A DNA stretch of 64,000 nucleotides, from IMG/VR virus record IMGVR_UViG_3300027749_002876, positions 248,001 through 312,000 of that record. The stretch is one strand, 5' to 3'. Below, one piece after another: positions 12,656 to 60,096 of this stretch. The notes under the pieces were generated by a model that saw nothing but the letters and a program-made list of their open reading frames with translations, searched no databases and had not been told where the DNA came from. The number at the start of each line of letters is the position of its first letter. Position 1 is the first letter of the stretch. The translations under genes were made by a program, and so were the position numbers.

Positions 12656-12673
12656 AGTATTCTTATTTATACT

Positions 12674-40502: not shown

Positions 40503-40528
40503 AGAATAGGCTCCGAAGAGCCTATTCT
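40503..40528 (-). terminator. terminator of tmRNA locus, AGGCTC/GAGCCT family
   Basis: AGAATAGGCTC-TTCG-GAGCCTATTCT on minus strand plus T-run. Confidence 0.8.
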
Positions 40529-40529
40529 G

Positions 40530-40870: not shown

Positions 40871-40871
40871 T

Positions 40872-45220: not shown

Positions 45221-45295
45221 TACTTATGAAAGTACAGGTATGTTGTAAAGTTTTTAAATTGATAATAAATGTTATATATTTTGTTGATATAAATA
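45221..45295. promoter_or_regulatory. divergent late-type promoters
   Basis: ATAAGTA (minus, 45221-45227) 5 nt before ATG 45215; TATAAATA (plus, 45288-45295) 6 nt before ATG 45302. Confidence 0.6.
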
Positions 45296-45301: not shown

Positions 45302-46396
45302 ATGCCTAAAAAGCATTTATCAATAACAGGAACACGCATGAGCAGAACACAATTTGAATTTACACCAGGAAAACCAATTAGAACATACGGAGCCAATGGC
45401 TCATGGAGAGATTGGAGCACCGATGAACTTGTGGGGGCAAAATTAAATTATCTATCAGGTTGGAAATGTGGTGCAGGCGTTGATAGCTTATTCATCGATA
45501 TGGATGGTGGTGTATGGACAGCTAGTTGTCGTGTAGGTGGCAAATTAGGTAGTGTTTGGGATGACTTTTCAGTTCCGGAAGATTGGATTGATTGTACTAA
45601 AAATGTATGTAGTTGCGGTGCTGACTTGTTTATCCCAAAAACTAGTCTTGTTGAATTCAAGCCATTACTACGAAAAGGACAAGAATTGCCAACTCAGGGT
45701 GAAATGTTAAATGAACAACTAACTGAGTTTGTAGGTATGGAACGAACACACGCTAGTACTCAAAAACAAATATATTGGGAAATAGGTCGTAGATGTAATT
45801 ATGATTGTAGTTATTGCTGGCCTTGGATACATAACAATACTGACCCACACAAGCCATTGGAAGATTTAATGAGAGCTACTCATTTGATTGAGAAAAAATT
45901 CACCAAAGGTGAAAGCGTTAACTTCATTATTAGTGGTGGTGAACCCACTGTTAATAAAGATTTCTTAGATTGGTTACGTTATTTAAATGCATGCGGACAT
46001 CATGTGAGCTTGCATAGTAATGGTAGTCGATTGCCTGACTATTACAAAGAAGTTATACATTACGGTGATTTGAACTTGAGTGTTCATTATGAGTTCTATA
46101 ACAGAGAAAAGTTTGTTAAAGTGGTTGAGGCTATTGCAAAAGAAAAATCAGAACACGGTGGTTGTGGTCACTTAGAAGTTAAGTTTATGATGGCTCCGCA
46201 CAACCGTGATGAGACATTGAGCTTAGAAGCTGAATTAAAAGAATTACCTCACTTTGTAGATTACTGCACCTGGGCTATTGTTCCTATACGAGGAGACATG
46301 AATAACAAAATCAGTTCACCTGATACCGGTTCAGGCAGTGAAGTTATGGAAGGCTACACTAAGGAAGATTACATTTTATTCGGAGATCGTAAATAA
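45302..46396 (+). CDS. radical SAM enzyme with N-terminal SPASM-like domain
   Basis: CNYDCSYC, SGGEPT, SNGSR; N-terminal WKC...C...CTKNVCSC. Confidence 0.9.
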   Translation: MPKKHLSITGTRMSRTQFEFTPGKPIRTYGANGSWRDWSTDELVGAKLNYLSGWKCGAGVDSLFIDMDGGVWTASCRVGGKLGSVWDDFSVPEDWIDCTKNVCSCGADLFIPKTSLVEFKPLLRKGQELPTQGEMLNEQLTEFVGMERTHASTQKQIYWEIGRRCNYDCSYCWPWIHNNTDPHKPLEDLMRATHLIEKKFTKGESVNFIISGGEPTVNKDFLDWLRYLNACGHHVSLHSNGSRLPDYYKEVIHYGDLNLSVHYEFYNREKFVKVVEAIAKEKSEHGGCGHLEVKFMMAPHNRDETLSLEAELKELPHFVDYCTWAIVPIRGDMNNKISSPDTGSGSEVMEGYTKEDYILFGDRK

Positions 46397-46397
46397 T

Positions 46398-48320
46398 ATG
46401 GAAAAAGACGAATGGATGGTAGAAACGTTAATACCAAGAAACACCGGTATACGCAAGAAGCCTAACATACAAGCTGTAACATATTTTAATGCTACTAGAA
46501 AAACTAAATTAGTACTAGCTGTAATGGGGTGCTGGGCTATTTGGATGCCACCATATAACTTAGGAAGACTAGCTTCATTAACTAGATCATCCGGATATGC
46601 AACAAAATGTTTTGATTTCAATGTTCAAAGTTATCACGACTTTAGAGAAATGTATCCTGGTTCTGATTTAGAGGATGCTTGGGGTACAGGTAATTGGTGG
46701 TGGTGGAAAGAACGTTATTTTGACAAAATACATGAAAGAAACATTCCACTACTAGAAAAATATGTGGATGAAATATTAGCAGAAGATCCGGATATTGTAG
46801 GATTAAGTTTATACTTTACTAACAGATTGCCGTCAGAGTGGGTAGCTAATGAAATTAAAAGACGTAGACCAAGTGTACTAATTATATTTGGTGGACCTGA
46901 ATGCCATTCAGAAGATTACGTTCCGCCCGAATCGGTCGACCACTGGTTTACGGGAGAATCTGAACAATTACTATTAGATTTTTTAGAGAAATACGAAACG
47001 GGTGAGAAGATTACTGAACGTCATTTGGGCAGTTTATATAGTTCTACTAGAATTGATATTGATAGTTTACCCTTCCCCGACTATTCTGATTTTGACTTTT
47101 CTAAGTATTTAGGACATTTATCAATTAATACTGAAATCAGCAGAGGGTGTATTGCTAAATGTAGCTTTTGTTCCGAAACATATTATTGGAAATATAGAGA
47201 TAGAGAAGCACATTCAATATTAGATGAGATAGAGCACCAAGTAAAAACCAACGAAATTGTTGCTGTTTCATTTGTTGATAGTTTAGTCAATGGCAATCTA
47301 AAAAGTCTCAAAGGTTTTGCTGAAGGATTAATTGATCGTAAATTAAACATTAGATGGTGGGGATATGCCAGATGTGATGGACGTATGGATGGTGCTTACT
47401 TTGATTTGCTTCGTGCTAGCGGTTGTGACGGATTCAGTTACGGAGTAGAAAGCGGTAGCCAAAAAGTATTAGACTTAATGCAGAAAAAAGTTAAAGTATC
47501 TGATATTAATGAAAATCTATATCATTCAGGTAGAGTGGGAATGACAGCTAATGCTAATTGGATTATCGGTGCGCCCGGAGAAGATATTGAGGCATTAGCG
47601 CATAGTATGAACCTTATTTGGAATCATAGAAATAATATACATTCAATTAGTCCAGGCAATGGTTTAGGTGACACGTTGGGTACTGACTATGATAATAGAG
47701 AAAAATACAACATAAACCCTCGTAACAAACCTTTCTTAGGACATTGGTACTCATTAGACTGGACTAATACTCAATTAAACAGATACATTAGAATGAAACT
47801 ATTTGTTATTCTTTTAAAGATAGCAAAAGATCATGGAGTGATTGTTAATCTTAATGGTGACAAAGGTATAACCTCACATTACGATTTAAAATTTGATGAT
47901 GACAATTATATTGTTGATAATATTGAATATGAGAATTTTGAATACCATCTATTAAAAACTGGTTACGGTTTTTTTGCTGACACCGTTGTGAATGAAGTAT
48001 TTTCTTTGTTCAGAATATTGTGGAGAATTAAAGGTGGTTTTGAAATTACGCTAAACTTTGAGCAAGAGGTTGATGTTGAGGCATTTGGTGGATTATTAAC
48101 TCATACACCACATACTTATAATGCAACACATTATTTCAAAATAGATAAAGAGGGTAATTTTCAATCTAATAATACATATGAGTTTTTTTATGAACCAGAA
48201 TCTTGGGATAGAATTGAGAATAAGAGTTTTAAATATGAAGGTAATGTTTCAGGTTATTGGGGTGAAGTAAAGATTGCTCCTGTGAAACGTCACATATGGA
48301 TAGAGAACAATATAAATTAA
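46398..48320 (+). CDS. cobalamin-binding (class B-type) radical SAM enzyme
   Basis: PPYNLGRL, DIVGLS, IIFGGPE, GESE, LPFPDY, SRGCIAKCSFC, GVESGSQKVL; start moved to MEKDEW (GGAG RBS). Confidence 0.9.
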   Translation: MEKDEWMVETLIPRNTGIRKKPNIQAVTYFNATRKTKLVLAVMGCWAIWMPPYNLGRLASLTRSSGYATKCFDFNVQSYHDFREMYPGSDLEDAWGTGNWWWWKERYFDKIHERNIPLLEKYVDEILAEDPDIVGLSLYFTNRLPSEWVANEIKRRRPSVLIIFGGPECHSEDYVPPESVDHWFTGESEQLLLDFLEKYETGEKITERHLGSLYSSTRIDIDSLPFPDYSDFDFSKYLGHLSINTEISRGCIAKCSFCSETYYWKYRDREAHSILDEIEHQVKTNEIVAVSFVDSLVNGNLKSLKGFAEGLIDRKLNIRWWGYARCDGRMDGAYFDLLRASGCDGFSYGVESGSQKVLDLMQKKVKVSDINENLYHSGRVGMTANANWIIGAPGEDIEALAHSMNLIWNHRNNIHSISPGNGLGDTLGTDYDNREKYNINPRNKPFLGHWYSLDWTNTQLNRYIRMKLFVILLKIAKDHGVIVNLNGDKGITSHYDLKFDDDNYIVDNIEYENFEYHLLKTGYGFFADTVVNEVFSLFRILWRIKGGFEITLNFEQEVDVEAFGGLLTHTPHTYNATHYFKIDKEGNFQSNNTYEFFYEPESWDRIENKSFKYEGNVSGYWGEVKIAPVKRHIWIENNIN

Positions 48321-48330
48321 GGTATATTAA

Positions 48331-49716
48331 ATGAATAACACTAAAACGTTTTGCAACATGGCATGGGATTATCCTATGTTCTTTATGTTTAAAAATGCAG
48401 TAGGTTACTGCTGTAGAACACCTAGAATAGATATTGATAATGAATTACTAGAGGAGATGAAAGAGGACTTTTGGTCTAATCATCCTAGCTTTGTCAATAG
48501 AAGAAAAGAATTAATCAATGGTATAAAAAGTAAAGATTGTGATACCTGTTGGCAATTAGAAGATGCTGGATTTAAAAGCTCTAGGAATGATGACCACTTC
48601 AATATGTTTATGAAGAAAAATTATCCCAATTTTAATGAAAAATTAGACCAGCGTTTATTTAAATTCTTTCCAGGCATTGAACGTAGTAACTATTCAAATG
48701 TAATTGAAATTGTATTGAATAACACATGTGATGCAAAATGTACATATTGTAGTGAACATTATAGTACTCAATGGGTAACTGAAAAAAAGAAGTTTGGTGG
48801 AATAAGTCCGTATTATACTGACATGAATGACAGAAATCCTAGAGCAGAAGAACTGTTCTGGTCATGGTATGAAAACAAAGTATTACATACTAATAAACGT
48901 TTTGGATTCATTGGTGGTGAACCGTTAATTATTGATGCATTATATGAATGTTTTGATAAATTAATTGAAATACATGAAAGAAAACAACTATCAATTCAGT
49001 CTGATGCGGATAAAATGGAACTATGTATTACTAGTAATATGAATACACCTCCTGCATATTTTGAAAAGTTTATGGGGTATGTGAAAAAACTAGAAAAACA
49101 TTTCAGAATTATCATTCAAGTAAGCGGTGAAAACGTAGGTGACGATTTAGAATATATACGACACGGTGTTAAATGGAAACGTTGGTCTAGAAATGTTGAA
49201 TATTTATTAGACAATACTAACATTACGCTAAACTTTTTACCATGCTTAAGCTTGTTAACTATTCCTAGATTTAACGAATACATACAATATGTAAACAAGT
49301 TAAACAAAAAATACGGAGTAATGAAAATACATCAAAACATTGTTACATGGCCAGTAGAACAAAGTCCTATGATAGCTCCTAAAGAATTTTCCCAGTACTT
49401 TGATCCATGCATTGACAGTGTGAATGAAATTCTTGCCGGAGAAATTAAGGATCGATTTATACGAGGTGAATATGAAAACCTATTATTGTGGCTTACAAAA
49501 ACACGTGAAGCTATTATAAGCAATCCAAGTGCAAGTGAACCTGTTGAGAATGCTAAAAAGTTTTATTCTTTTTTTAATGAGTTAGATCGTAGAAGAAATA
49601 CTAGTGTATTGAAAATATTTCCTGAAATAAAAGAATTTTATGACACAGGTAAACAGTTATATGAAGGCACAGTACAACCACGCATTATACCAATTGTAGC
49701 TGTGACAAATGAATAA
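48331..49716 (+). CDS. radical SAM enzyme with N-terminal twitch-like Cys domain
   Basis: FC...YCC...CDTCW; CDAKCTYC; IGGEPL. Confidence 0.88.
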   Translation: MNNTKTFCNMAWDYPMFFMFKNAVGYCCRTPRIDIDNELLEEMKEDFWSNHPSFVNRRKELINGIKSKDCDTCWQLEDAGFKSSRNDDHFNMFMKKNYPNFNEKLDQRLFKFFPGIERSNYSNVIEIVLNNTCDAKCTYCSEHYSTQWVTEKKKFGGISPYYTDMNDRNPRAEELFWSWYENKVLHTNKRFGFIGGEPLIIDALYECFDKLIEIHERKQLSIQSDADKMELCITSNMNTPPAYFEKFMGYVKKLEKHFRIIIQVSGENVGDDLEYIRHGVKWKRWSRNVEYLLDNTNITLNFLPCLSLLTIPRFNEYIQYVNKLNKKYGVMKIHQNIVTWPVEQSPMIAPKEFSQYFDPCIDSVNEILAGEIKDRFIRGEYENLLLWLTKTREAIISNPSASEPVENAKKFYSFFNELDRRRNTSVLKIFPEIKEFYDTGKQLYEGTVQPRIIPIVAVTNE

Positions 49717-50938
49717 CAATTTACCAAATAGTGCAACATTGTGTACACAATTATGGAATCATGCTGTTGTTGATATAGATAAGAAAAAAATCAGAGCATG
49801 TTGTAAAACTCCTTCTATACAATTAACAGATAATGATATTGCTACATACAAGCAAGATGCTTTTATTAATTTACCAGTAATACGTGAAGCAAGAAAAGAA
49901 ATGCTTGACGGTGAGAAGCCAGCTATGTGCCGCACCTGCTGGGATTTAGAAGCCAAAGGAAATTTTAGTTTTAGAACTGGGAATTTTGCTTGGCAAAACT
50001 ATTTTAAAGATTTAAATTACAGTGATTATACATTATCAAATCATCCAAATGATTTAGATATACAGTTGGATAACTATTGTGATTTAAAGTGTTTATATTG
50101 CAATGAAGAATTTAGTAGCCAATGGCAAGCAGAGAAACAAAAGTTTGGTGATATACAGTCTTTTATCCCTATACAAACAGCACATGATGACTTTGTTAAA
50201 ATTTTCTTTACATGGTTTAACACAGTAAAAGATAACTTTGAACGTATTGCTTTTTTAGGCGGGGAGCCATTAATCAGTCCTCGTTTCTATGAGTTACTTG
50301 ATATGATTCTTGAAGCGTACAATAATAAATTCCCCGATGAATTGGTGATTAATATCATAACTAATCTGAATACTACATCAAAATACTTAGAAAAATTTAT
50401 TGACACTATCAATCGTTATAAAGATAAAGTTAAGTTTAACATAAACATTTCACAAGAAGCATATGGGCAGCAAGCTGAAGCTATTAGACATGGTTTAGAT
50501 TTTAACAGATTTATGTTTAATTTTAATGAGTTAGCCAAAATTAAAGGGATTGTATTAAGCACTATAACTACTGTCAATGTATTGAGCCTAAGTACATTGT
50601 ATAAGTATTTAAAATTTGTGACTGAGATTGAAAAAGAACACAATGTTCACGTTATCATTTATCCAAACTTAGTGAGCTTTCCAGAACATTTACAAGTTTC
50701 ATTAATGGATAAACAGTTGGGTAAAGAATATATTGATTTGGCTATTGAAGCTTTATCCGAAAAAAATCACCAGGGGTACATTGACTTCTTAAATACATTA
50801 TACGATAAGTTTGTCTTTGAAGAAATCAGAGATACAGATAACCACAATTCTCTTATAAAAGAACTAGAAACTCTGTCTGTTAGACGAAACGTAAATTATA
50901 AGGAAATATTTAATGAGTACAAATACATCTGGGGATAA
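49709..50938 (+). CDS. radical SAM enzyme with N-terminal twitch-like Cys domain
   Basis: LC...ACC...CRTCW; CDLKCLYC; LGGEPL. Confidence 0.88.
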   Translation: MNNNLPNSATLCTQLWNHAVVDIDKKKIRACCKTPSIQLTDNDIATYKQDAFINLPVIREARKEMLDGEKPAMCRTCWDLEAKGNFSFRTGNFAWQNYFKDLNYSDYTLSNHPNDLDIQLDNYCDLKCLYCNEEFSSQWQAEKQKFGDIQSFIPIQTAHDDFVKIFFTWFNTVKDNFERIAFLGGEPLISPRFYELLDMILEAYNNKFPDELVINIITNLNTTSKYLEKFIDTINRYKDKVKFNINISQEAYGQQAEAIRHGLDFNRFMFNFNELAKIKGIVLSTITTVNVLSLSTLYKYLKFVTEIEKEHNVHVIIYPNLVSFPEHLQVSLMDKQLGKEYIDLAIEALSEKNHQGYIDFLNTLYDKFVFEEIRDTDNHNSLIKELETLSVRRNVNYKEIFNEYKYIWG

Positions 50939-52508
50939 CTCAGTTTGGGATTCACTGACACATGAACATGCTGAGTCAGGAAAAGTGTACAACGAAACAC
51001 TCGAGGTTATAACACCACCATTACAAAACTACATGGATGAACCTACCTTCCCTGCACAAGTTGATCCAGCTAACGTATCTTGTAAATTCAAATGGGATTA
51101 TCCTATTGTTAACTTGATGAGCGGTCATAGTAGAACATGTTGCCGTGTACCAAAACAAGTTATAACTCAACAAGACCTTGATATGTATGGCATAGATGCT
51201 ATTCAAAATTTACCATACGAACAAGATAGACGTAGAGAAAAGATTTTAGGTATTACACATGTTGATTGTGAATCTTGTGTAAGATTAGAATGGAATGGTG
51301 CTATTAGCCCTCGTAGTAATATGCAAGGGTTTGTTAATGAGTGGTTAATTACCCATCATAATGCATATCCACATAAAGTAAAAAATGTACAGAAATGGCA
51401 CGTTGACCATATGCCAACAAATGCCAATGACTTACCCTTCAATCATCCATTACTAAGAGCAGATCATCCTGATATGTTAGAAATTATCTTGGGTAATCAT
51501 TGTGATTTGAAATGTACATATTGTAGTATTCATTACAGCACTCAATGGCAAACTGAATTAATTAAGTTTGGTGATATCAAAAAAGAAGATATTGACCATC
51601 ATTTTCCGGCAGCGCCTGAAAAATTAGAACCTGTATTCTGGGAATGGTTCTATGATGTTGGTCGTCATTCTAGTAAAGTTATTAACATTCTAGGTGGCGA
51701 GCCTACATATATGCCAAAGTTTTATGATGTTATGGAAAAGTTAACAGCGGCTTACAAAGACTTAGGTAAGAAAGATAGACATGTTGAATTAGGTATATTA
51801 TCTAACATGAACACTAAACAACCACAAATGGATCGTTTTTTAAATCTATTACCTGAACTTACTAAGTATCTATTTTTAAGATTACAACCTAGCATTGAAG
51901 CTGTTGGTAAGAAAGCAGAATATATTAGATATGGTTTAGATTGGAATCGATTTGAAGGTAACATCAAAAGAATATTAGGAGAACGATCTAAGTATGGATT
52001 AACTCCTGACAACTTTGGCATGGGATTTCAAATGGCTTTGAATAGCTTTAGTATTTCAAGTTTACCAGACTTTATTCATTGGTCTAATGAATTGATTAAT
52101 GAGTTTGACTTTGAAATTGGATTGATGAAAAATGTGGTTAGTTTTCCTAGACACCATAATCCACACGTACTTACTCCTGACTTTGGTACTTACCTTGAAC
52201 AAGCACGTGATTATATTGAAATATATGCCGAGCGCAATGATAGACAAATCAGAAGATTATCAGCATTGCATCATGGTGTCCCCCCTCATGGTAGTTGGGT
52301 GAGCTATAATGTAGATTTATTAAACAGTTTAGTAGATTCTGTCAGTAGTGATTATCGCAGTGAATATGATGTTGAAAGCCGTGGCCATTGGTATCATTTT
52401 GTAGAATCTATGAAGCATAGAAGAAATATTGATGTATTAGAATATTATCCTGAAATGACAGAATTTTATAATTTGTGCAAGAAACATGCACAACATGGTG
52501 ATAAATAA
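50913..52508 (+). CDS. radical SAM enzyme with N-terminal twitch-like Cys domain
   Basis: SC...TCC...CESC; CDLKCTYC; LGGEPT. Confidence 0.88.
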   Translation: MSTNTSGDNSVWDSLTHEHAESGKVYNETLEVITPPLQNYMDEPTFPAQVDPANVSCKFKWDYPIVNLMSGHSRTCCRVPKQVITQQDLDMYGIDAIQNLPYEQDRRREKILGITHVDCESCVRLEWNGAISPRSNMQGFVNEWLITHHNAYPHKVKNVQKWHVDHMPTNANDLPFNHPLLRADHPDMLEIILGNHCDLKCTYCSIHYSTQWQTELIKFGDIKKEDIDHHFPAAPEKLEPVFWEWFYDVGRHSSKVINILGGEPTYMPKFYDVMEKLTAAYKDLGKKDRHVELGILSNMNTKQPQMDRFLNLLPELTKYLFLRLQPSIEAVGKKAEYIRYGLDWNRFEGNIKRILGERSKYGLTPDNFGMGFQMALNSFSISSLPDFIHWSNELINEFDFEIGLMKNVVSFPRHHNPHVLTPDFGTYLEQARDYIEIYAERNDRQIRRLSALHHGVPPHGSWVSYNVDLLNSLVDSVSSDYRSEYDVESRGHWYHFVESMKHRRNIDVLEYYPEMTEFYNLCKKHAQHGDK

Positions 52509-52512
52509 AAAA

Positions 52513-53187
52513 ATGAATATTACATTTACGTTAGATCCAAACAATAGATCGATATACTATATCAATTTAGAAGTAAGCCCTGAAATACTCGAAGAACTCA
52601 AGCAGGAAAATTGGGTACCTATTACTCCTACTCATTTAGATGAATATTATACAAAACGTCATCGTCTAGATGATGGATACGGAATAAAAGGTTTATTAGT
52701 ACGTAAAGTATACACTTTTATGAGGTCTTCTGAATTTAAAAAAACTATGTTAGACTTGATATGGAAAGATATGACATTTCAACATAAATGGGGTCCTCGT
52801 CTTAACTATGAAAAAATTAACAATTGTACCATTGTTGAATTTGGTTTTGATAAAGATTGTCCTGGATTTAGTACAGACCTTCATTTAGAAAATCGTTGTC
52901 AAATTGCATTTGGTAAGATTTTTTTTGTACCTGAGGATGCGGAAAATAAAAGCTCATATTTTTATAGAACAATAAATCGTGATGATCCTTTAAGAGTCCC
53001 TGTAGGTATGGGACTAGGTTGGCTATGTGTCAATACACATGAAGGTTGGCATGAAGGTTATAACGCTAGTGAGGAAGATAGATATTCATCTAGTATAAAT
53101 TTTACATTTGATATATTTAACAACGGCCATGTAAAAAGCGATGACGCCACTATTAAATATATACGTGGCGAAGCTGCTTCTATTTAA
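52513..53187 (+). CDS. 2OG-Fe(II) oxygenase-like protein
   Basis: DCPGFSTDLHLE, NTHEGWHEG, R-Y-S distal motif; start moved to MNITF after GATAAATA (52500-52507). Confidence 0.55.
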   Translation: MNITFTLDPNNRSIYYINLEVSPEILEELKQENWVPITPTHLDEYYTKRHRLDDGYGIKGLLVRKVYTFMRSSEFKKTMLDLIWKDMTFQHKWGPRLNYEKINNCTIVEFGFDKDCPGFSTDLHLENRCQIAFGKIFFVPEDAENKSSYFYRTINRDDPLRVPVGMGLGWLCVNTHEGWHEGYNASEEDRYSSSINFTFDIFNNGHVKSDDATIKYIRGEAASI

Positions 53188-54371
53188 TAATTTATTAATT
53201 TCCATAATTCAGGCAAATAGTCTTTCATATCTGTTTGTCTATAGTCATCGTGTAATTTTAAAAAGTTAATTAACTTAATTCTATATTCTTCTGCATTAGA
53301 ATATTCATATCCATCATCATTTGGTAGATTAATGAAATTAATGATAAATTCTTTGTGACCGGTGTCAGGAGATTTTAAATTATACTTACTAAAATCTATC
53401 TTATCTATTTTTTCTACTAATTTATTTTTTAATCTTGATGGTAAGTTTTTAAGACATAACATTTGTGGATCATGTATTAGATTTGCAAACATAATAAAAC
53501 AACCATACTTACTTAATTCATCTAATATTTCTTCTAAGTTTAAAATATTTAAAATACTAGCAGTTGGATAAATACCAACAAAGAAAGGGTGTGGTAATAC
53601 AGCATATTTTTTGATGTTATCATCTATTTTATTCCATTTTGCTGGCCAACGTTGATATTCAAATCTAGTACCAATATCATCTATACTCAAAAACAAATTT
53701 ATTCTTTTAAATTGTTTAAGTAATTCTATTAGTTCATCAGTATATACTGTACCATTTGTATTCAGTGTTAAACTAATATTTTTAGCTAAATTTTTATCTA
53801 CTAAAAATTTAATGTAATCCAATACTTCATCATTGATTAATGGTTCACCGCCGTATATTAATAGATATTCAAGATTGACTGACATATCATGCAATGCTTG
53901 TAATCGTTCACCTTCAAATTTATCTAATGATACCGTTTCATAGTAATCAGCTGGTATCAACGGTATATTTAATTTATTAAATTGTGTTTGCCATAAACTA
54001 CTTAGATAAGGACTACATATGCGACAAGCCAAATTACATTTATTAGATAGTTTTAAACTAAGGTAATTTACAACAGGCTTATCAATTCTATACCTGTTGT
54101 TATATTGATTTTGTTGACGTAAACTAAAAACTCCGGCTTCTTCTTCAGTCCAACATCTTATACATTCTTCTGGTTTCTCCCCTGCTAAGAATTTCTTTCG
54201 TAATGTATTAACATCTTCACTATTCCAAATAGTATCTAATCTATCTTCAAGTATATTATACATCCCGATCTGATCGGGTTTTTTAATTACTTTACGTATT
54301 TTACAGCATACTTGACATGAGCCTTCTGGACTTATTTCCAAACTGTTAAAGGGCATTGAACAAAAACTCAT
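53184..54371 (-). CDS. twitch-domain radical SAM enzyme
   Basis: FCSMPF..VCC..CIRCW; CNLACRIC; YGGEPL; NTNGT. Confidence 0.9.
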   Translation of the reverse strand: MSFCSMPFNSLEISPEGSCQVCCKIRKVIKKPDQIGMYNILEDRLDTIWNSEDVNTLRKKFLAGEKPEECIRCWTEEEAGVFSLRQQNQYNNRYRIDKPVVNYLSLKLSNKCNLACRICSPYLSSLWQTQFNKLNIPLIPADYYETVSLDKFEGERLQALHDMSVNLEYLLIYGGEPLINDEVLDYIKFLVDKNLAKNISLTLNTNGTVYTDELIELLKQFKRINLFLSIDDIGTRFEYQRWPAKWNKIDDNIKKYAVLPHPFFVGIYPTASILNILNLEEILDELSKYGCFIMFANLIHDPQMLCLKNLPSRLKNKLVEKIDKIDFSKYNLKSPDTGHKEFIINFINLPNDDGYEYSNAEEYRIKLINFLKLHDDYRQTDMKDYLPELWKLINY

Positions 54372-55594
54372 TCTAATAAACCTTTCAGTTCAGGGAACAA
54401 TTCAATTGTATTTTCTTTTCTAATACCATCTAATAATTTAGTTTCTATTTTTAAATTATCAATTTCAGTTTGTGTATCGTCTGAATACATATACTTTATA
54501 ACCTTATGTATTTCATTTATAGTAACATCAGTAAGAGTATATGATTCACATTTTTTAGCATATTCTAGCCAATGCTGTTCTACTAATTCTTTTTTATCTT
54601 TAGGTAAAGATGTAAGATTGTACATTACTGGGTCTGTTAGTATGTTATAATAGATGTTATCAATATGAATTATACCTTCATCAGCTAAAAACAAATGCAT
54701 TTTAGGTAAATGAAACGCATTCAATATGCTAATGGTAGGACATAATTGTAAATAGATATCTGGACAATTTTGTTTAATTGTTCTTAGATTAGATAAGATA
54801 TTATCCCATGTACTGCCATTGCGTATGATGCTGGCTTGTTCCCAACCAGCATCTAAACTTAGTGATAGTCGGACTTTCTTAAATAAATTCCAATAATCAG
54901 TTACCACATTTTTATCTTTAAATGTTAGGCGTGTACAATTTGTATTGTAACGCAATACCAAATCAAATTTCTTATGCTCAACTAGAATATCTAATATTTC
55001 GTAATGTTCTGCCAATAGTAATGGCTCTCCACCACAAAAATATATTTCTTCAATACTATCTAAATTGTTTTTGAAAAACTCAAAAAAATCATTCTTTTCA
55101 TCAAACGCTTTTTGCAATACAGGAACTTTTCTTTTCAAACTAGATACTGTTTCTTCTGCTATGCTACTACTATTGATATGGTCACATGTTCTGCATTTTA
55201 AATTACAGAGATTACTAAATCTTACGTCCCATGTGGCTATTTTATTTCCAACAAGATTGTTATTTTCATCAAATTCTAGTTTTTTAAATGCATCACCATA
55301 ATTTCTGTTACTAAACCATCTATAACTATGAGCACCATATGTTTGTTCAGGCAATGAACAACGATTACAGGACTCTGGTAATTTAGGTCCATTAATCATT
55401 TGTTGTTGCATTTCTGTTAGTTTGACATTAGAATTAGAATATATGTCAGACATTTTTTGAGTTTTTGTATCACCTAATATATAATTTTGATTGATACAAC
55501 ATGGGATGGCTCTTCCGTCTGTCCAAACACAAGCATGAATAAAAGGAAGAACACAAAAATGGTTAGAATTAAGTAAATGTTCTTTATCAATCAT
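54368..55594 (-). CDS. twitch-domain radical SAM enzyme
   Basis: FCVLPF..PCC..CNRC; CNLKCRTC; CGGEPL. Confidence 0.9.
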   Translation of the reverse strand: MIDKEHLLNSNHFCVLPFIHACVWTDGRAIPCCINQNYILGDTKTQKMSDIYSNSNVKLTEMQQQMINGPKLPESCNRCSLPEQTYGAHSYRWFSNRNYGDAFKKLEFDENNNLVGNKIATWDVRFSNLCNLKCRTCDHINSSSIAEETVSSLKRKVPVLQKAFDEKNDFFEFFKNNLDSIEEIYFCGGEPLLLAEHYEILDILVEHKKFDLVLRYNTNCTRLTFKDKNVVTDYWNLFKKVRLSLSLDAGWEQASIIRNGSTWDNILSNLRTIKQNCPDIYLQLCPTISILNAFHLPKMHLFLADEGIIHIDNIYYNILTDPVMYNLTSLPKDKKELVEQHWLEYAKKCESYTLTDVTINEIHKVIKYMYSDDTQTEIDNLKIETKLLDGIRKENTIELFPELKGLLE

Positions 55595-56307
55595 GTTGGT
55601 TGTTTGCTTATTAAAATATTTATATAGTCTTGTACTTCTTTGGCATTCTCTATCATTTCATAAGGGTTATCGGGTAATTGTTTTTCTAAACGAATATTAG
55701 TAATAATTGGAATTAAAAAATATCTAGTCAAATCATAAACAGCACGTTCATATCTTACAGTAAAGGTAGTATCCAGTTTATATTCCATAATTAATTTATC
55801 AAAATTTATAATTCTATTGTATAACCATGACATATTTGGAAAAAGTTTGGTAGGTATATGAATAGGATTATCATGTGTGCCGTGAAGTGAATTCCATTTA
55901 TTAGTAGAAAGACCAAATACATAACTTACCAAGTGATTTTCTATATTTTCTCTTTTTATAATTAGAAATTTAAAATTTAATGCATGTAGCTCATTTAATA
56001 TCTTTGTTGTAAAAGGTATATTATCTTCAGTTAAAAATAATTTTATTACCAATGATTGATCTTGATTACCAGTTTTTAAAAGGTTAAGTACATAATCAAT
56101 CTGCACTTCATGGGAATCGTATTTTGTAAAATCAGAAGGTATTGCACGTAATAAACGATTGTCATATTGTTCTATACAATAGGGATGTCCAACCGTAAAA
56201 GGCTCTGCTAAATTTTTCATGCCTGATCCTATTGATCTAGCTATCAATTCTGAAACATACTGACTACCAGATCTGGGTAGACCTATCAGACAAATTCTAG
56301 TAGTCAT
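55591..56307 (-). CDS. sulfotransferase-like protein
   Basis: GLPRSGS PAPS-binding loop, EPF, KREN...VS, VRYE. Confidence 0.7.
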   Translation of the reverse strand: MTTRICLIGLPRSGSQYVSELIARSIGSGMKNLAEPFTVGHPYCIEQYDNRLLRAIPSDFTKYDSHEVQIDYVLNLLKTGNQDQSLVIKLFLTEDNIPFTTKILNELHALNFKFLIIKRENIENHLVSYVFGLSTNKWNSLHGTHDNPIHIPTKLFPNMSWLYNRIINFDKLIMEYKLDTTFTVRYERAVYDLTRYFLIPIITNIRLEKQLPDNPYEMIENAKEVQDYINILISKQPT

Positions 56308-57254
56308 GCTACCTTTGTACTCATTATGTCAAAATTGCAATGGCACATTGTTTTATCACATAGTATTGGATCTTTTGGTACTTCAAAATTCTCAAAAATA
56401 TTCCCAATCTTGTCACCCACTCTACACCATCCTCTATATACATCACCTCTTAGGTCCACAATGATTTGCTCTACACCTGCATAACATTTCCAGCCACTCC
56501 AGTCATTTGTTTTTTGGCTAATAAATCTATGTGCGCTTGATACAATCTCAGTACCATCTTCTTGTACCATCTTCATTGCACCACGATAATAATCAAATGA
56601 TTTGGTGTACTTAATATGTTTAACAATCAATTCATGTTGTTTATCAAATATCTTTTTCTGAAACTCATCGTAGTCATACAATGTATCACCAAAGTCATGT
56701 ATCAATGGTTGTAATGCCATACTGATATTACCTATACCTTTAACTTTGTTTGCTATAGCATAACAAAAGTCAAATTTTTCAGGACTCATCATAATGTTAA
56801 CATGAGTTCTAACATCATTATTGATTAATTTAACTACTTGAACAAAGTGGTCAGCATCAGCAAACTCAGGATGAAAACTTAAACATACGTGGTCAAAGTA
56901 TTGTTTGTTATCTTCCCACCAACGTAACGTTCTACTACCATTACTGATTAATCCAACTTTAGCTCCCAACTCAGTGCAATGTTTGCATATCTCTATAAAA
57001 TGTTTGTATAATGTTACTTCACCACCAGTTAATTCAAAATAAACTTTACGCGGAGCAACTTGTTCTACTACACGTGAAATAAATTCTTTAACTAAATCAA
57101 TTTCAGGCCATTTAATACTACCTGAGTGTAAATTATCCGGACAATAACTACATTCAAAATTACAAGTGTTGCCTAAACACCAGTTAACTACAAACCATTC
57201 TTCATGCTCCGGAGTACTATGTGCTAATTTAATATATTTGTGTTCCATTACCAT
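56304..57254 (-). CDS. radical SAM enzyme with C-terminal SPASM-like domain
   Basis: CNFECSYC, TGGEVT, SNGSR; C-terminal WKC...WC...CDKTMCHC. Confidence 0.9.
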   Translation of the reverse strand: MVMEHKYIKLAHSTPEHEEWFVVNWCLGNTCNFECSYCPDNLHSGSIKWPEIDLVKEFISRVVEQVAPRKVYFELTGGEVTLYKHFIEICKHCTELGAKVGLISNGSRTLRWWEDNKQYFDHVCLSFHPEFADADHFVQVVKLINNDVRTHVNIMMSPEKFDFCYAIANKVKGIGNISMALQPLIHDFGDTLYDYDEFQKKIFDKQHELIVKHIKYTKSFDYYRGAMKMVQEDGTEIVSSAHRFISQKTNDWSGWKCYAGVEQIIVDLRGDVYRGWCRVGDKIGNIFENFEVPKDPILCDKTMCHCNFDIMSTKVA

Positions 57255-58201
57255 CCTTCTATTTTTCTAATAACATCCATCTCTTTAACTAACGGACCGA
57301 TGTTATATTTATCAGCTAGATAATGTCGTTTGAAGAACTTGCTTTGTTCTACATCATGCATACACATTGGTAAACCTAACTTATCATGCAATGCTTCACC
57401 TAACAAGTTTGCTTCTTTTTGTGGATCTCTATGTGAGTGTTCTTCCCATAATACAGTATAGTTATCAAACCATTGTACGTTGGCAGGATCCCATTCAGTT
57501 AACATAGTCATGTATGTGCCTAATCGTGCACCATAGATAGCCCACTCACCGTTCTCTACATCACGACCGATGTTGTGCCAAATTGTTAAGTTGTTTAAAT
57601 TACGACTAGCAACAGTTTCTTTAAATTCATCAATCGTAGGTCTTGCACCACGATTTAAACTCATCTTAACACCTTCACGAAAACCTGCACGCCAAGCTTG
57701 AAAGGGTGTATGATTGGGATATGTTGTACTGTAACAATCATACATAGACCAATATAAGTTATCCTTACTATCTAAGCAAAAGTCAGCAATACGTGATACA
57801 TCTCCATCTTTCTGATTCTCATGTGTTTGCATATTCATTACATAAGTCTTTGTCCAACTACTCATGCCACCATTACCATAACGTAGTCCATTGATACTAT
57901 TAGTTGCCTTCCAACGATATTGTGCTAAATGATAACTAGGGTCTTTATTGGTGAAATCAAATTGCATGTTGAAGAACCTTTCTTCAGGCATATTATCACC
58001 GTCAATTAAAATAAAACGTTCAGTGTCACTTGCCATTGCAGCCGCTTTATGCGCGGCATCACTACCTTTTATATTATCTACTCGTTTAGCCCAAGGAACC
58101 ATGTTCTTAATCTTAAGCCAAAATTCTTCTTTCTGCGGCTCGTCATAACTAAGATAGATGCAATCTAAATCGGCTACATCAATGATATCATTCGAGTTCA
58201 T
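57248..58201 (-). CDS. glycosyltransferase-like protein (GT-A)
   Basis: YLSYDEP, AHKAAA, ILIDGD (DxD), NGLRYGNGG, AWRAGFRE. Confidence 0.65.
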   Translation of the reverse strand: MNSNDIIDVADLDCIYLSYDEPQKEEFWLKIKNMVPWAKRVDNIKGSDAAHKAAAMASDTERFILIDGDNMPEERFFNMQFDFTNKDPSYHLAQYRWKATNSINGLRYGNGGMSSWTKTYVMNMQTHENQKDGDVSRIADFCLDSKDNLYWSMYDCYSTTYPNHTPFQAWRAGFREGVKMSLNRGARPTIDEFKETVASRNLNNLTIWHNIGRDVENGEWAIYGARLGTYMTMLTEWDPANVQWFDNYTVLWEEHSHRDPQKEANLLGEALHDKLGLPMCMHDVEQSKFFKRHYLADKYNIGPLVKEMDVIRKIEGW

Positions 58202-58547
58202 ATATGTTTAATTTCCATTTTGTTGTTTTACCGTCATATGAGCTATCAGCTATAATGCTTATATCTTCTGCAATGCAATCTACCCCATCATCACTATTGG
58301 GCATTAACTTATATACAACTGATTTAGGACCAGCTGTTGATAGTCTACCATCAATAACTCTTATGTCTGGTCTTGCGGCAGCAAAAGTTTGTGCATCAAT
58401 TACAATGTAATTGCCAGTCATTGATTTATCACCGGTATAACATACTACCGCCCCGTTTTCATCATAATATAATCTAAATTCGGGTGGTTCCATTTTAGGT
58501 TGTTCCCATATAACTATATATTCTACTTGGGTATTTTCTATGCTCAT
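58188..58547 (-). CDS. hypothetical protein
   Basis: 119 aa, coupled in operon. Confidence 0.65.
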   Translation of the reverse strand: MSIENTQVEYIVIWEQPKMEPPEFRLYYDENGAVVCYTGDKSMTGNYIVIDAQTFAAARPDIRVIDGRLSTAGPKSVVYKLMPNSDDGVDCIAEDISIIADSSYDGKTTKWKLNIYELE

Positions 58548-59299
58548 TTCATACTTTCTAATATTTTATCACTAAAATTCTTTATATGATAGTGAAAAGG
58601 ATATCGTTGTGGGACAGTTTGAATTCTAATATGATCCGGTAAACATTCATATACAAATGTATCAGTCCAATTTTCAGTTGGTGTTTCATTAATATATTGT
58701 TTCATATGCACCATTGACATATCAGTAAACGTTGGCATCATAGTGTTTTCCACACCCATAATATGACAAGCAATAGCGTATGCCCAATCAGTTGTTGCTA
58801 ACTCTTGTGCATTGCATCTTAATGACGATTTGTAATGTACCCAATTTTCAAACACATCTCTTACAATAGCAAAAAATTGTTTTGCAGTATCAGATTTTTT
58901 AAAATATGTAATTGCATTATATGCATCAGGTAAATTATTATCATCTATAAATCTACGATATACTCTATTGTCTGATATGTCTTGTTTGTAATTTCTAATT
59001 ATACTTGATACTACTATGTCTCTATGTGATAACACATCCCACCAATAGTCAATGTTTTTAGGAATGTACATATCTGCTTCTAGTTTAATTGTATACTCGT
59101 ATGGACTAGCATCATATACTTGCCAATCATTTTGTAATTTCCAATTAGTGTCAGGTGCTTGATCACCATATGGCAACATGTCTGTAGTTACTATAGTTAC
59201 ATTAGCATTGGGCATTACTCTTTTAATACTTTTTTCTAACACATTAGCACATTTAACATAGTCATCACCTTGCGCCATAATCACAAAGCCTTTGTTCAT
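58544..59299 (-). CDS. glycosyltransferase-like protein (GT-A)
   Basis: KGFVIMA, YDASPYEYTIKLEADM, TTDWAY. Confidence 0.65.
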   Translation of the reverse strand: MNKGFVIMAQGDDYVKCANVLEKSIKRVMPNANVTIVTTDMLPYGDQAPDTNWKLQNDWQVYDASPYEYTIKLEADMYIPKNIDYWWDVLSHRDIVVSSIIRNYKQDISDNRVYRRFIDDNNLPDAYNAITYFKKSDTAKQFFAIVRDVFENWVHYKSSLRCNAQELATTDWAYAIACHIMGVENTMMPTFTDMSMVHMKQYINETPTENWTDTFVYECLPDHIRIQTVPQRYPFHYHIKNFSDKILESMK

Positions 59300-60096
59300 A
59301 CTAACTCCATAAAGTTTTCTTTATTCATAACGTGGCAGTCCATATCTTTAACAATAATATATTCTTTACGAATTTTTCCTCGTTGCCAATTATCAAACAT
59401 CACCGTATATTCAGTATTAAAACTATCATCACTATTTTTATAAACCATAGTATTCTTGCCTATGTGAACTAAATTCCAAGGAATTAAATCTTCTACTGAA
59501 AGAGTATTGCCATTAGTAATACGTGTTGCAAGAGTGATAGCATAGTCATTGCGATAAGGGGAAGGAATAAATCCATGTAAATTTGCATAATGTTCATAAT
59601 TACGTTGAACCATACCCATTGAGTTAAATATCTGTTCTGCTCGTTTAGTTTTATTAAATCTAATAACTGTGGCCCATAATGTTTTAAATCCATATGGATT
59701 TAACATCTCTATTTGGGGGGTATTATACATTAGGAAATGTGTATCTTCGTGACAACAAAAATCAGTAGGTAACTCAAATGTCTTTAACAGTTTAGTTGAA
59801 TTAACTAAGTAGTCTGTATCTATTAATAATGTTTCATCATATGGAGTTAATTCAAATACCCGATATCTACCCTTATTAATCCATGTTTCTCGATCTCGTT
59901 TGTTACTTGTATCCGCAGTAGCGATAATAGTATTATCAAACACATAATCAATATTTTCAGGTATGGAAGTAGTATCTGTTATAATTGATACCGGTAAGTT
60001 TAAAAAGTGATTAATGCGTTTAGCTGTTGCAACAGCCATATCATAGTAGTTGAATTTAGTAGAGTTAAACGCAAATAGTATTACACCTTTGCTCAT
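59296..60096 (-). CDS. glycosyltransferase-like protein (GT-A)
   Basis: KGVILFA, ELTPYDETLLIDTDYL (DxD), YRNDYA; paralog of neighbour. Confidence 0.7.
   Translation of the reverse strand: MSKGVILFAFNSTKFNYYDMAVATAKRINHFLNLPVSIITDTTSIPENIDYVFDNTIIATADTSNKRDRETWINKGRYRVFELTPYDETLLIDTDYLVNSTKLLKTFELPTDFCCHEDTHFLMYNTPQIEMLNPYGFKTLWATVIRFNKTKRAEQIFNSMGMVQRNYEHYANLHGFIPSPYRNDYAITLATRITNGNTLSVEDLIPWNLVHIGKNTMVYKNSDDSFNTEYTVMFDNWQRGKIRKEYIIVKDMDCHVMNKENFMELV

Follow-up and report, generated by a model that had tools for sequence, protein, structure and literature searches.

Radical SAM (rSAM) enzymes and glycosyltransferases have been seen together in phages before, as the "host recognition cluster" of pelagimyophages was reported to hold GT8 genes and radical SAM cassettes (PMC7029224). 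A minimal version of the module described here is carried by the cultured Ralstonia jumbo phage RsoM2USA (PMC8504454). Enzymes of the SPASM/twitch type very often modify peptides, but they also include BtrN, a carbohydrate dehydrogenase. The locus considered here lies in a stretch of 64 kb (the window) taken from a jumbo phage contig of 524,565 bp, in which three glycosyltransferase-like genes are packed together with eight rSAM genes beside tail-fibre genes. An earlier note, made from the sequence alone, had described positions 45302-60096 as a block of eight rSAM enzymes with tailoring enzymes, next to tail genes and behind late-type promoters. With the exception of the promoters, this description has proven correct. 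Related but uncharacterized cassettes are found in dozens of environmental phage contigs and in chromosomes of predatory bacteria, and most likely build an unusually modified sugar coat on an acceptor that can, on present evidence, only be inferred.

The Radical SAM Enzymes

Eight open reading frames (ORFs) with one CX3CX2C motif each lie in the block, and no other ORF of 150 amino acids or more in the window has the motif. Seven of the eight reach the Pfam gathering score for Radical_SAM (PF04055), whereas the product of 48331-49716 remains below it (22.1 bits against 29.5) but passes NCBIfam NF033640. Five of the proteins exceed the curated cutoff of NF033640, "twitch domain-containing radical SAM protein" (183-317 bits against 170), across the full model, and share five invariant N-terminal Cys residues plus the GGEP motif. 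Three of these N-terminal-twitch enzymes are on the plus strand. The first (48331-49716, 228.6 bits) has orthologues in L003 (71% identity; L numbers denote the related loci that were fetched) and in the Bdellovibrionota loci L081/L082 (50%). The second (49709-50938, 233.8 bits) is in a clade with L003 and L082 with a support of 100. The third (50913-52508, 183.1 bits) has a 50-amino-acid N-terminal extension, is 66% identical to L082 14943-16538, and has a clade support of 99-100. The other two are on the minus strand, at 53184-54371 (300.6 bits) and 54368-55594 (317.2 bits).

One rSAM is of the cobalamin-binding type (class B) and is probably a methyltransferase. Its listed ORF starts at GTG 46338 and ends at 48320 (plus strand), but the ATG at 46398 lies 1 nt after the upstream stop and is the more likely start. 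It matches Radical_SAM (1.7e-12), with a B12-binding hit of 3.5e-7 that falls just under the Pfam cutoff (30.5 against 32.1 bits), and has partial hits to many class B families, including PhpK, RiPP C-methyltransferase, BzaD and BchE, all below cutoff.

The remaining two rSAMs are circular permutations of each other. Both carry a five-Cys auxiliary domain with identical spacing (C-x19-C-x21-C-x4-C-x-C). In the protein encoded at 45302-46396 (plus strand, "Nperm") this domain is N-terminal (C56, C76, C98, C103, C105) and is followed by the rSAM core (C165-x3-C-x2-C, GGEP at 212; Pfam Radical_SAM 8e-16), whereas in the protein encoded at 56304-57254 (minus strand, "Cperm") the core comes first (C31-x3-C-x2-C, GGEV at 77) and the auxiliary domain is C-terminal (C257, C277, C299, C304, C306). 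Consistent with a permutation, a BLASTP comparison of the two gives two segments in swapped order (7e-19 and 1e-16). All NCBIfam equivalog hits of Nperm are far below cutoff. The earlier note had called these two proteins SPASM-like, but they are so only by motif; Pfam SPASM hits fall instead on two of the N-twitch proteins, those at 53184-54371 (8e-9, residues 4-74) and 54368-55594 (2e-6, residues 14-79).

Glycosyltransferase-Like Genes and Other Neighbors

Directly preceding the Cperm gene is orf317 (57248-58201, minus strand), which encodes a divergent glycosyltransferase of predicted GT-A fold with an invariant D66-x-D68 that belongs to no Pfam family. Its AlphaFold2 model (pLDDT 90.4, pTM 0.89) matches RmlT, the PBCV-1 capsid glycosyltransferase, TarP and cellulose synthase in a Foldseek search of the PDB (E 2e-4 to 1e-2, probability 0.9-1.0), albeit with low TM-scores (0.2-0.35), and many viral GT-A enzymes in BFVD. 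It has at least 8000 homologous 90% clusters, the best 120 of which are 81% identical or more and all annotated as "hypothetical". Two further genes on the minus strand are glycogenin-like (GT8-like). The family profile of 58544-59299 matches glycogenin-1 at 1.1e-8, and the gene also matches phrog_1903 at 7e-9. The product of 59296-60096 is more divergent, with an invariant D92-x-D94, and its family profile matches glycogenin-1 only weakly, at 0.018; this family is always paired with that of 58544-59299 in related loci. The note had counted three to four glycosyltransferase-like genes, and a fourth GT-A-like domain is indeed found, but outside of the block, in a 1447-amino-acid protein (40872-45215, minus strand) transcribed divergently from the plus-strand rSAM operon. 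This protein has about 12 repeats of an "FDFSWxPDP…IYxWG" unit (about 67 amino acids) and a C-terminal orf317-like domain (BLASTP 5e-11 over residues 1217-1413) in which the DxD motif of the family is replaced by "TVFAKL", so that it is probably a pseudo-glycosyltransferase. It gave no Pfam or PHROG hit.

Two more putative tailoring enzymes are assigned with less support. The gene at 52486-53187 (plus strand) encodes a 233-amino-acid protein with a 2OG/Fe(II)-oxygenase-type HxE…H…RxS motif (H130, E132, H186, R196, S198). The assignment is by motif only, as no Pfam, NCBIfam, PHROG or PDB hit was found, but H130, H186 and R196 are invariant and D/E132 is nearly so across 60 homologues. A homologue sits at the same position in the sister contig L161. 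The stop of this gene overlaps that of the convergent rSAM gene at 53184-54371 by 4 nt. The gene at 55591-56307 (minus strand) encodes a 238-amino-acid protein with a predicted P-loop kinase/sulfotransferase fold (AlphaFold2 pLDDT 76), and its GLPRSGSQY (lacking the Walker lysine) and KRENIExxLxS motifs are invariant in eight homologues, one of which heads the rSAM operon in contig L163. Foldseek finds P-loop kinases at E of about 1e-3 (TMq 0.33) and the sulfotransferase SULT7A1 at TMq 0.43, and thus does not separate kinase from sulfotransferase.

Two small minus-strand genes without an assigned function complete the block. That at 58188-58547 encodes a conserved protein of 119 amino acids, between the GT8 and GT-A genes, with homologues at the same position in L084, L085 and L161 and no family hit; that at 60093-60398 encodes 101 amino acids at the head of the transferase block, with homologues at the same position in L085 and L008. 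Next to the block, a 316-amino-acid Ser/Thr/Gly-rich (27% S+T) protein, fibre-like by its composition, is encoded at 60446-61396 (minus strand), and its homologues lie directly upstream of the GT8 pair in 21 fetched loci. At 61406-62641 (minus strand) lies a tail-fibre gene with a C-terminal intramolecular-chaperone (Peptidase_G2/S74-type) domain (PF11962 9e-5; phrog_14394 "virion structural protein" 2e-10). The claim that the block lies behind late-type promoters is not supported: TATAAATA occurs 5 times in the window against about 12 expected by chance, with one copy 6 nt before the 45302 start codon, and sigma-70-like sites are not enriched.

Conservation of the Module

The module is not unique to this phage. 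In IMG/VR, 497 stretches encode N-twitch relatives, and in the 78 other loci fetched these form tandem arrays, with a median of 4 N-twitch genes per locus (maximum 10), often in the order fibre, orf316, GT8, GT8, GT-A and rSAM array. Each of the seven non-B12 rSAMs of the window has an orthologue (43-66% identity) in a chromosomal cluster of a Bdellovibrionota genome. An orf317-type GT-A gene directly precedes a Cperm-type rSAM gene here and in 24 of 26 viral loci that have this rSAM type.

The neighbors of the relatives are sugar enzymes. An SDR sugar epimerase/dehydratase lies inside the module in L013, a carbamoyltransferase is inserted in L161, and GT90, GT2 and SDR genes lie next to the single N-twitch gene of the isolate Nereida ignava. 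In L129, an rSAM–rSAM–Gfo/Idh/MocA fusion is found. In the Bdellovibrionota cluster L082, GT2 domains are fused to rSAM-derived domains, and two membrane-anchored proteins carry a GDSL-like motif.

A Putative Glycan-Tailoring Pathway

The interpretation in the earlier note, a pathway that builds a heavily tailored glycan or other modification on virion proteins or DNA, is supported in part: the glycan core of the idea is supported by the transferase assignments and by the sugar-enzyme neighborhoods, whereas the acceptor rests on inference. The explanation that we favor, with moderate confidence, is that the region is a soluble, cytoplasmic module for building and tailoring glycans. In this view, the two GT8-like enzymes and the novel GT-A enzyme would transfer sugars onto an acceptor made in the infected cell, and the seven twitch-type rSAMs (the five N-twitch enzymes and the permuted pair) would abstract hydrogen atoms from the sugar residues or their precursors, driving oxidation, epimerization, deoxygenation or C-C/C-X bond formation. 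The cobalamin-type rSAM would add methyl groups to unactivated carbons, and the 2OG-oxygenase-like and sulfotransferase-like proteins would add hydroxyl and sulfate (or phosphate) groups. The favored acceptor is a virion fibre protein encoded immediately upstream (61406-62641 or 60446-61396).

The enzyme classes, the gene order, its conservation, the orthology and the sugar-enzyme neighborhood of the relatives follow directly from the analysis, but that the radical chemistry acts on sugars, each of the individual reactions, and the identity of the acceptor are inferred. No rSAM of the NF033640 family has a known substrate, and the sugar chemistry is thus inferred from neighbors only. No nucleotide-sugar synthesis gene lies in the window's own block, and given the habits of SPASM/twitch enzymes, the rSAMs could act on protein rather than sugar. 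In L163, an rSAM set with the sulfotransferase-like gene stands with no homologue of the window's transferases in the 16.7 kb fetched. A cytoplasmic acceptor, such as a virion protein, is favored by the adjacency of fibre genes in many phages and by the absence of any membrane protein, as no protein of the block has a hydrophobic 19-residue window above 1.4 on the Kyte-Doolittle scale, and no flippase, polymerase or lipid-carrier transferase is present. Nevertheless, the virion as the acceptor is supported by adjacency alone.

Alternative Readings

Of the alternatives, which all appear less likely, remodeling of the host envelope survives best, although it remains improbable. The transferases and rSAMs could alter the O-antigen, capsule or exopolysaccharide of the host during infection, blocking superinfection or preventing progeny from re-adsorbing to debris, as was proposed for the GT8 genes of the pelagimyophage clusters (PMC7029224). 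Bacterial relatives sit in contexts resembling envelope polysaccharide loci, as in Nereida, and L082 has a signal-peptide protein that looks like an outer-membrane barrel besides its two membrane-anchored GDSL-motif proteins, although these two readings were made by eye and not by a database hit. Arguing against this idea, none of the phage proteins has a transmembrane segment, no initiating phosphoglycosyltransferase or exporter is present in the block, and the module is tied to fibre genes rather than to early or lysogeny genes.

Similarly doubtful is a RiPP-like modification, in which the twitch/SPASM-type and class B rSAMs act directly on fibre or other virion polypeptides (cross-links, epimerization, C-methylation) and glycosylation is a separate decoration. 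The N-twitch proteins have weak hits to many peptide maturases (PapB, SCIFF, QhpD, XyeB and others) and the class B enzyme to RiPP C-methyltransferases, and both the adjacent fibre genes and the rSAM set of L163 are consistent with this notion. However, all peptide-maturase hits are 10-20 times below cutoff and cover only the rSAM core, no precursor-peptide gene or RiPP recognition element was detected in a block whose genes abut or overlap along its whole length, and the candidate fibres contain 0-1 Cys, making thioether chemistry unlikely. The pairing of GT-A and rSAM genes and the fusions to GT2 and Gfo/Idh/MocA domains point to sugars instead.

A diffusible glycoside or pseudo-oligosaccharide, perhaps aminoglycoside-like and made to inhibit competitors or host defenses, is quite unlikely. 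The enzyme palette, when the relatives are included, resembles that of aminoglycoside tailoring, with its BtrN-type twitch rSAMs, class B rSAM methylases, carbamoyltransferases, and Gfo/Idh/MocA and SDR enzymes, but no cyclitol synthase, aminotransferase or exporter is in the block, and the module keeps a fixed place among fibre genes in several kinds of phage contig. Hypermodification of DNA bases to evade restriction is about as unlikely. Phages do glycosylate DNA, one rSAM (M6 gp53) acts in thymidine hypermodification (PMC8989533), and the 238-amino-acid P-loop protein (orf238) has a kinase-like fold, but M6 gp53 is spore-photoproduct-lyase-like and not twitch-type, the module sits in the structural/fibre region, its bacterial orthologues lie in chromosomal clusters with GT2 domains, and no nucleotide-metabolism or DNA-binding domain was detected in the block, in searches that did not specifically include 5-HMUDK and aGPT-Pplase. 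Ordinary cofactor or housekeeping enzymes (MoaA, QueE, NrdG, PflA), the first three of which the note had named as an outcome that would count against its reading, and antiviral viperin-like enzymes can all but be dismissed, as the sub-threshold hits to these models cover only the first 90-120 positions of the rSAM core and score 4-10 times below curated cutoffs (MoaA 36 against 284 bits, NrdG2 42 against 131, QueE 21-26 against 206, viperin 48-60 against 180).

Comparison with Described Systems

Among solved structures, the best match of the N-twitch profile is the twitch domain of BtrN, although this match is weak (E 0.003). Among cultured phages, the minimal copy of the module in RsoM2USA consists of gp355-gp348 and lies shortly downstream of the tail sheath gene (ORF359; PMC8504454).

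Organization of the region and its radical SAM genes

The region lies on the 524,565-bp contig IMGVR_UViG_3300027749_002876, and its proteins recur, 100% identical, on a 171-kb contig. It encodes a large terminase that is 43-51% identical to those of jumbo myoviruses (Sinorhizobium phage Phosso, Pseudomonas phage PA5oct, Cronobacter phage GAP32), whereas no nucleotide-level relative is found among 50,697 GenBank phages and a nucleotide search of the block against INPHARED phages gives no match, indicating that this is an uncultured jumbo or mega phage. The only nucleotide-level similarity of the first 25 kb of the window to any GenBank phage is at 2338-3405 (-), a stretch 74% identical to RecA-like genes of the jumbo phages Xanthomonas XbC2 and Escherichia JNE01/Turkey5. 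A 423-aa ORF at 18301-19572 (-) matches PHROG 1314, "HNH endonuclease", at 6e-108 and is probably a homing endonuclease among the structural genes. Six paralogous genes of about 312 aa, at 21735-22685, 22717-23649, 23681-24637, 28400-29341, 29373-30317 and 39533-40471 (all -), are 65-73% identical to each other. Each has internal repeats of about 95 aa, is Ser/Thr/Gly-rich and has no Cys, and they are probably repeated virion (fibre or propeller-like) proteins.

The block itself is gene-dense and made of two convergent operons, with the plus strand running from 45302 to 53187, the minus strand running from 60398 to 53184, and the two terminal stop codons overlapping by 4 nt. Eight proteins carry one CX3CX2C motif each, as is characteristic of radical SAM (rSAM) enzymes, and a regex scan of all ORFs of 150 aa or more finds no other such ORF in the 64 kb, so that the clustering is not due to chance. 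The observation made in the earlier note, a block of eight rSAM enzymes with tailoring enzymes next to tail genes, is confirmed. Seven of the eight have a GGEP or GGEV motif, and the cobalamin-type protein has no such motif by regex. Similarly, seven score above the gathering threshold of the Pfam Radical_SAM model (PF04055), and the eighth, at 48331-49716, scores 22 bits against a cutoff of 29.5 but is above the cutoff for NCBIfam NF033640, the "twitch domain-containing radical SAM protein" family.

Five of the proteins match NF033640 over its full length (model positions 1-4 to 397-398) and above its curated cutoff of 170 bits, with 228.6, 233.8, 183.1, 300.6 and 317.2 bits. Their alignment shows five invariant N-terminal Cys residues (C-x17/18-CC-x41/42-C-x2-C), the CX3CX2C motif and a GGEP motif, so all five look catalytically intact, although the binding of an auxiliary [4Fe-4S] cluster by these N-terminal residues is inferred from sequence alone. 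One further protein resembles class B (cobalamin-dependent) rSAM enzymes: the B12-binding model PF02310 scores 30.5 bits at residues 136-195, just under its cutoff of 32.1, the rSAM core follows at residues 266-427, and partial hits to 20 or more class B families are all below cutoff. Its real start is probably ATG 46398, 1 nt after the upstream stop. The remaining two, at 45302-46396 (Nperm) and 56304-57254 (Cperm), are circular permutations of one another. BLASTP aligns the N-terminal 113 residues of the first to the C-terminal 112 of the second (7e-19) and the two cores to each other (1e-16), and their auxiliary Cys residues have identical spacing, C-x19-C-x21-C-x4-C-x-C. This pair does not qualify as SPASM-domain rSAMs, which have a seven-Cys motif (CX9-15GX4C…CX2CX5CX3C…C) and two auxiliary clusters, since only five auxiliary Cys are conserved and PF13186 gives no hit. 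The PF13186 hits fall on the N-terminal domains of two of the N-twitch proteins instead.

Glycosyltransferase-like and other putative tailoring genes

Single-sequence Pfam, NCBIfam and PHROG searches of the non-rSAM genes are almost empty, even at E up to 10. The gene at 57248-58201 (orf317) has no family hit, and a profile search against PDB sequences gives nothing, but AlphaFold2 yields a confident model (pLDDT 90.4, pTM 0.89), the alignment submitted having left out a row from the Ralstonia jumbo phage RsoM2USA. The best matches of this model among PDB and viral (BFVD) structures are GT-A glycosyltransferases, namely RmlT, the PBCV-1 capsid glycosyltransferase, TarP, cellulose synthase and the Che8 phage glycosyltransferase, with probabilities of 0.9-1.0 but low TM-scores. 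D66-x-D68 is invariant in 27 homologues, consistent with a GT-A fold carrying a DxD motif, and transferase activity is inferred from this. A family profile of 58544-59299 matches glycogenin at 1e-8 over the first 106 positions, supporting a GT8-like assignment, although the single sequence has no Pfam hit and the window protein has E-A-D where the family consensus has D-A-D. The profile of the second GT8-like candidate, 59296-60096, matches glycogenin only at 0.018, which is weak, and its D92-x-D94 is invariant.

The gene at 55591-56307 (orf238) is modeled with a P-loop kinase/sulfotransferase fold (pLDDT 76), and fold search matches both P-loop kinases and sulfotransferases. It has a PRSGS loop without a Walker lysine and an invariant R…S motif, but searches of families and a profile search against PDB sequences return no hit, so that "sulfotransferase-like" is a reasonable but not a proven description. 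The gene at 52486-53187 (orf233) has no detectable relative of known function: Pfam, NCBIfam and PDB sequence searches are negative, and a search of 1.84 billion representatives widened the family to 109 clusters but brought no annotated relative. Across 60 homologues, H130, H186 and R196 are invariant and residue 132 is D or E, which is the HxD/E…H…RxS pattern of 2OG/Fe(II)-dependent oxygenases, and the putative assignment is by this motif only.

A tail fibre with an intramolecular-chaperone domain lies at 61406-62641. On the other side of the block, the gene at 40872-45215 (-) encodes 1447 residues (orf1447), with about 12 repeats of an "FDFSWxPDP…IYxWG" unit (period about 67 aa) that resemble a segment of the orf317 GT-A domain, and a C-terminal orf317-like domain. 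It has no family hit in any search, although BFVD holds 804- and 1076-aa uncharacterized phage proteins that contain an orf317-like domain (TMq 0.6). The C-terminal domain has "TVFAKL" where every other family member has a DxD (VDGDA, IDGDN and similar). This fourth "glycosyltransferase" is therefore probably a non-catalytic derivative that belongs with the module, outside the 45302-60096 block of the earlier note. A phage-encoded tmRNA gene at 40503-40905 (-) overlaps the last ~30 nt of this gene. ARAGORN reports the tag peptide ANDSQFSIAA, and Rfam gives beta_tmRNA (RF01850) at 95.4 bits (gathering 84; E 2e-29) and tmRNA_permuted (RF04321) at 98.9 bits. The betaproteobacterial type hints at the host, and fits the nearest cultured relative of the module being a Ralstonia phage.

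The claim that the block lies behind late-type promoters is not supported. TATAAATA is rarer than chance in the window (5 copies against about 12 expected), and sigma-70-like and terminator-like sites are at chance level. Nevertheless, three copies, at 9525-9532 (-), 12664-12671 (-) and 45288-45295 (+), lie 6-8 nt upstream of the start codons of the terminase gene, the 12203-12655 gene and the first rSAM gene, which leaves no room for a Shine-Dalgarno sequence.

Distribution of the module in phages

A profile of the five N-twitch paralogues finds 497 confirmed stretches in IMG/VR. ORFs were called in the 80 loci kept and compared with all window proteins, showing that N-twitch genes come in tandem arrays, with a median of 4 per locus and a maximum of 10, and that 68 of the 78 other loci have three or more. 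Of these loci, 47 also hold an orf317-type gene, 34 hold the GT8-like pair, and 25 hold fibre-like genes. The order fibre, orf316-like gene (related to the 316-aa fibre-like protein at 60446-61396), GT8, GT8, (small gene), orf317, rSAM array recurs. In 24 of the 26 viral loci with a Cperm-type rSAM, one copy is directly preceded by an orf317-type gene, but many of these loci are near-duplicates and the number of independent cases is smaller. orf317 itself has at least 8000 homologous clusters in metagenomes, of which the best 120 are 81% identical or more, and none of these has a name or Pfam domain.

RsoM2USA is the only cultured phage found with the transferase-rSAM module. A tblastn search with an N-twitch protein found only four records, and the N-twitch protein alone gave weak hits in three GenBank records other than RsoM2USA. 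The minimal version in RsoM2USA consists of gp355 (fibre-like), gp353 and gp352 (GT8-like), gp350 (orf317-like, 39%), gp349 (N-twitch) and gp348 (short orf317-like), all of which are annotated "hypothetical" and lie just downstream of the tail sheath gene (PMC8504454). The phage-type module, comprising fibre, orf316, GT8 pair, orf119 (a 119-aa small gene), orf317 (62% identical) and an N-twitch array, is also carried by two contigs of 148 and 183 kb (NZ_JBBAKG010000003.1 and NZ_JBBAKG010000001.1) of a "Haliscomenobacter sp." MAG, which are probably jumbo-phage contigs binned into a bacterial MAG.

Bacterial relatives and gene neighborhoods

In GTDB genomes, the closest relatives are in Bdellovibrionota. 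A 1.74-Mb contig (locus L082) has orthologues of all five N-twitch genes of the window (a to e, lettered in their order along it), arranged as e, d, a, b, c, with 43-66% identity as against 19-27% between the window's own paralogues, and of both permuted rSAMs (46-54%). This cluster is flanked by LolA-like, rplU and obg genes and its GC content equals that of its flanks, indicating that it is chromosomal. A FastTree phylogeny of 298 N-twitch proteins puts window paralogues a, b, c and d each with one viral contig (L003) and then with Bdellovibrionota sequences (local support 97-100), but as this tree is not bootstrapped and is rooted at the midpoint only, it does not establish the direction of transfer.

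The neighbors of these relatives point to carbohydrate chemistry. The L082 cluster includes two GT2 domains fused to rSAM-derived domains, which lack CX3CX2C and thus link the folds evolutionarily but are not active rSAM fusions, as well as a secreted protein and two membrane-anchored proteins with a GDSL-like motif, read by eye. The isolate Nereida ignava has a single N-twitch gene beside GT90, GT2 and an SDR epimerase/dehydratase, and a Myxococcales protein fuses two rSAM domains to a Gfo/Idh/MocA oxidoreductase domain. In one viral locus (L013), an SDR sugar epimerase/dehydratase sits between the GT8 and orf317 homologues. A sister phage contig (L161, ENA ERZ28594079 scaffold_129) has the same architecture at 60-81% identity, but with a carbamoyltransferase (Carbam_trans_N/C) at 431-1909 (-), inserted between the orf1447 homologue and the first rSAM gene, a 250-aa gene in place of the class B-like rSAM, and an extra N-twitch gene. 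Tailoring genes are therefore exchanged between close relatives around a stable rSAM core.

Possible functions and targets

The interpretation offered in the earlier note, a pathway that builds a heavily tailored glycan or other modification on virion proteins or on DNA, is partly supported, in that a glycan pathway is well supported but this support does not extend to its target. The set of rSAM and transferase-like genes, their order and their recurrence elsewhere are observed directly, whereas catalysis by any of these proteins, sugar transfer, auxiliary cluster binding and the nature of the acceptor are inferred. No protein in the phage block has a transmembrane-like segment, and no flippase, polymerase or lipid-carrier transferase is present in it, so the acceptor is probably cytoplasmic. 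The fixed position among fibre genes in the window phage, RsoM2USA and the IMG/VR contigs favors a virion protein, and candidates are the fibre at 61406-62641 and the 27% Ser/Thr protein at 60446-61396, but this remains an inference. One caution is contig L163, where an orf238-like gene, both permuted rSAMs (74-85% identical) and three N-twitch genes stand with no homologue of the window's transferases in the 16.7 kb fetched.

Host-envelope remodeling, direct protein modification, a small-molecule product and DNA modification remain possible, in roughly that order. Ordinary cofactor enzymes such as MoaA, QueE and NrdG, whose presence had been named beforehand as an outcome that would count against the glycan pathway, are rejected on curated cutoffs, and a defence or viperin reading is also rejected: MoaA, QueE, NrdG, PflA and viperin models all score 4-10 times below their cutoffs and match only the N-terminal half of the core, and PADLOC pVip hits cover only the first ~100 of 257 model positions (up to 150 in two).

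A more far-reaching possibility, which is unlikely on present evidence but not excluded, is that arrays of N-terminal-twitch rSAM enzymes form a previously unrecognized class of post-glycosylation, radical glycan-editing enzymes that phages would use to diversify the sugar coat of their receptor-binding fibres. In this view, tailoring genes (class B methylase, carbamoyltransferase, sulfotransferase-like, oxygenase-like) would be swapped between close relatives as a host-range or anti-defence strategy, and the whole seven-rSAM set would be exchanged with Bdellovibrionota, predators that also use fibre-like adhesins to recognize prey.

Radical SAM cassettes next to tail-fibre genes have been mentioned in marine phage surveys but never explained, and the NF033640 family, which in this sample is widespread in environmental phage contigs and recurrent in Bdellovibrionota and Bacteroidota MAGs, has no known reaction. 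Literature searches for the function of the N-twitch family, and for rSAM with jumbo phage and glycosyltransferase, returned nothing relevant. The window gives an unusually complete example, with three handles for experiments in the conserved GT-A-rSAM gene pair, the orthologous chromosomal cluster in Bdellovibrionota, and the minimal five-to-six-gene version in the cultured RsoM2USA. If the product is a radically tailored glycan on virion fibres, it would be a new layer of phage-host recognition and a new source of carbohydrate-modifying radical enzymes. If the target is the host envelope, DNA or a small molecule, the chemistry would still be new.

Comparison with known systems

The thymidine hypermodification clusters of phages M6 and ViI are likewise phage-encoded, multi-enzyme, combinatorially varying tailoring clusters that include an rSAM enzyme (PMC8989533). 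Their rSAM is, however, of a different, spore-photoproduct-lyase-like type, their substrate is DNA, and their partner enzymes (5-HMUDK, aGPT-Pplase, PLP enzymes) were not detected here in general family searches. NF033640 (N_Twi_rSAM), which five window proteins match end to end, is a sequence-defined subfamily with no assigned reaction, and membership says nothing about function. The best solved-structure match of the N-twitch profile is the twitch domain (residues 182-257) of BtrN, the rSAM dehydrogenase of butirosin biosynthesis, which similarly combines an rSAM core with a single-cluster twitch auxiliary domain and has a carbohydrate-type substrate. This match is weak (E 0.003) and restricted to about 75 residues, the twitch domain is N-terminal here and C-terminal in BtrN, and no aminocyclitol pathway genes are present.

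Among virus-encoded virion glycosylation systems, Foldseek places orf317 next to the capsid glycosyltransferase of chlorovirus PBCV-1 (2p6w), whose PDB title states its role in virion glycosylation, and the glycosyltransferase of mycobacteriophage Che8, which also glycosylates virions. These are soluble, virus-encoded GT-A glycosyltransferases and, as in those systems, no lipid-carrier machinery is present here. None of those systems is known to include rSAM enzymes, whereas 8 of the 15 genes in 45302-60398 are rSAMs, so that the module would differ from them by an rSAM array of unknown chemistry, if indeed it glycosylates virions. The same kind of arrangement, GT8 genes and rSAM cassettes among tail-fibre genes, has been noted in passing, without analysis of the cassettes, in the "host recognition cluster" of pelagimyophages (PMC7029224), as have many rSAM genes in one phage genome, a T4-like marine viral genome with 12 of them (PMC5332604), and the IMG/VR loci fetched here show the same synteny. 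The window's rSAM set is nevertheless closer to a Bdellovibrionota chromosomal cluster than to most viral arrays, and sits in a 524-kb phage related to the PA5oct, GAP32 and RsoM2USA jumbo phages.
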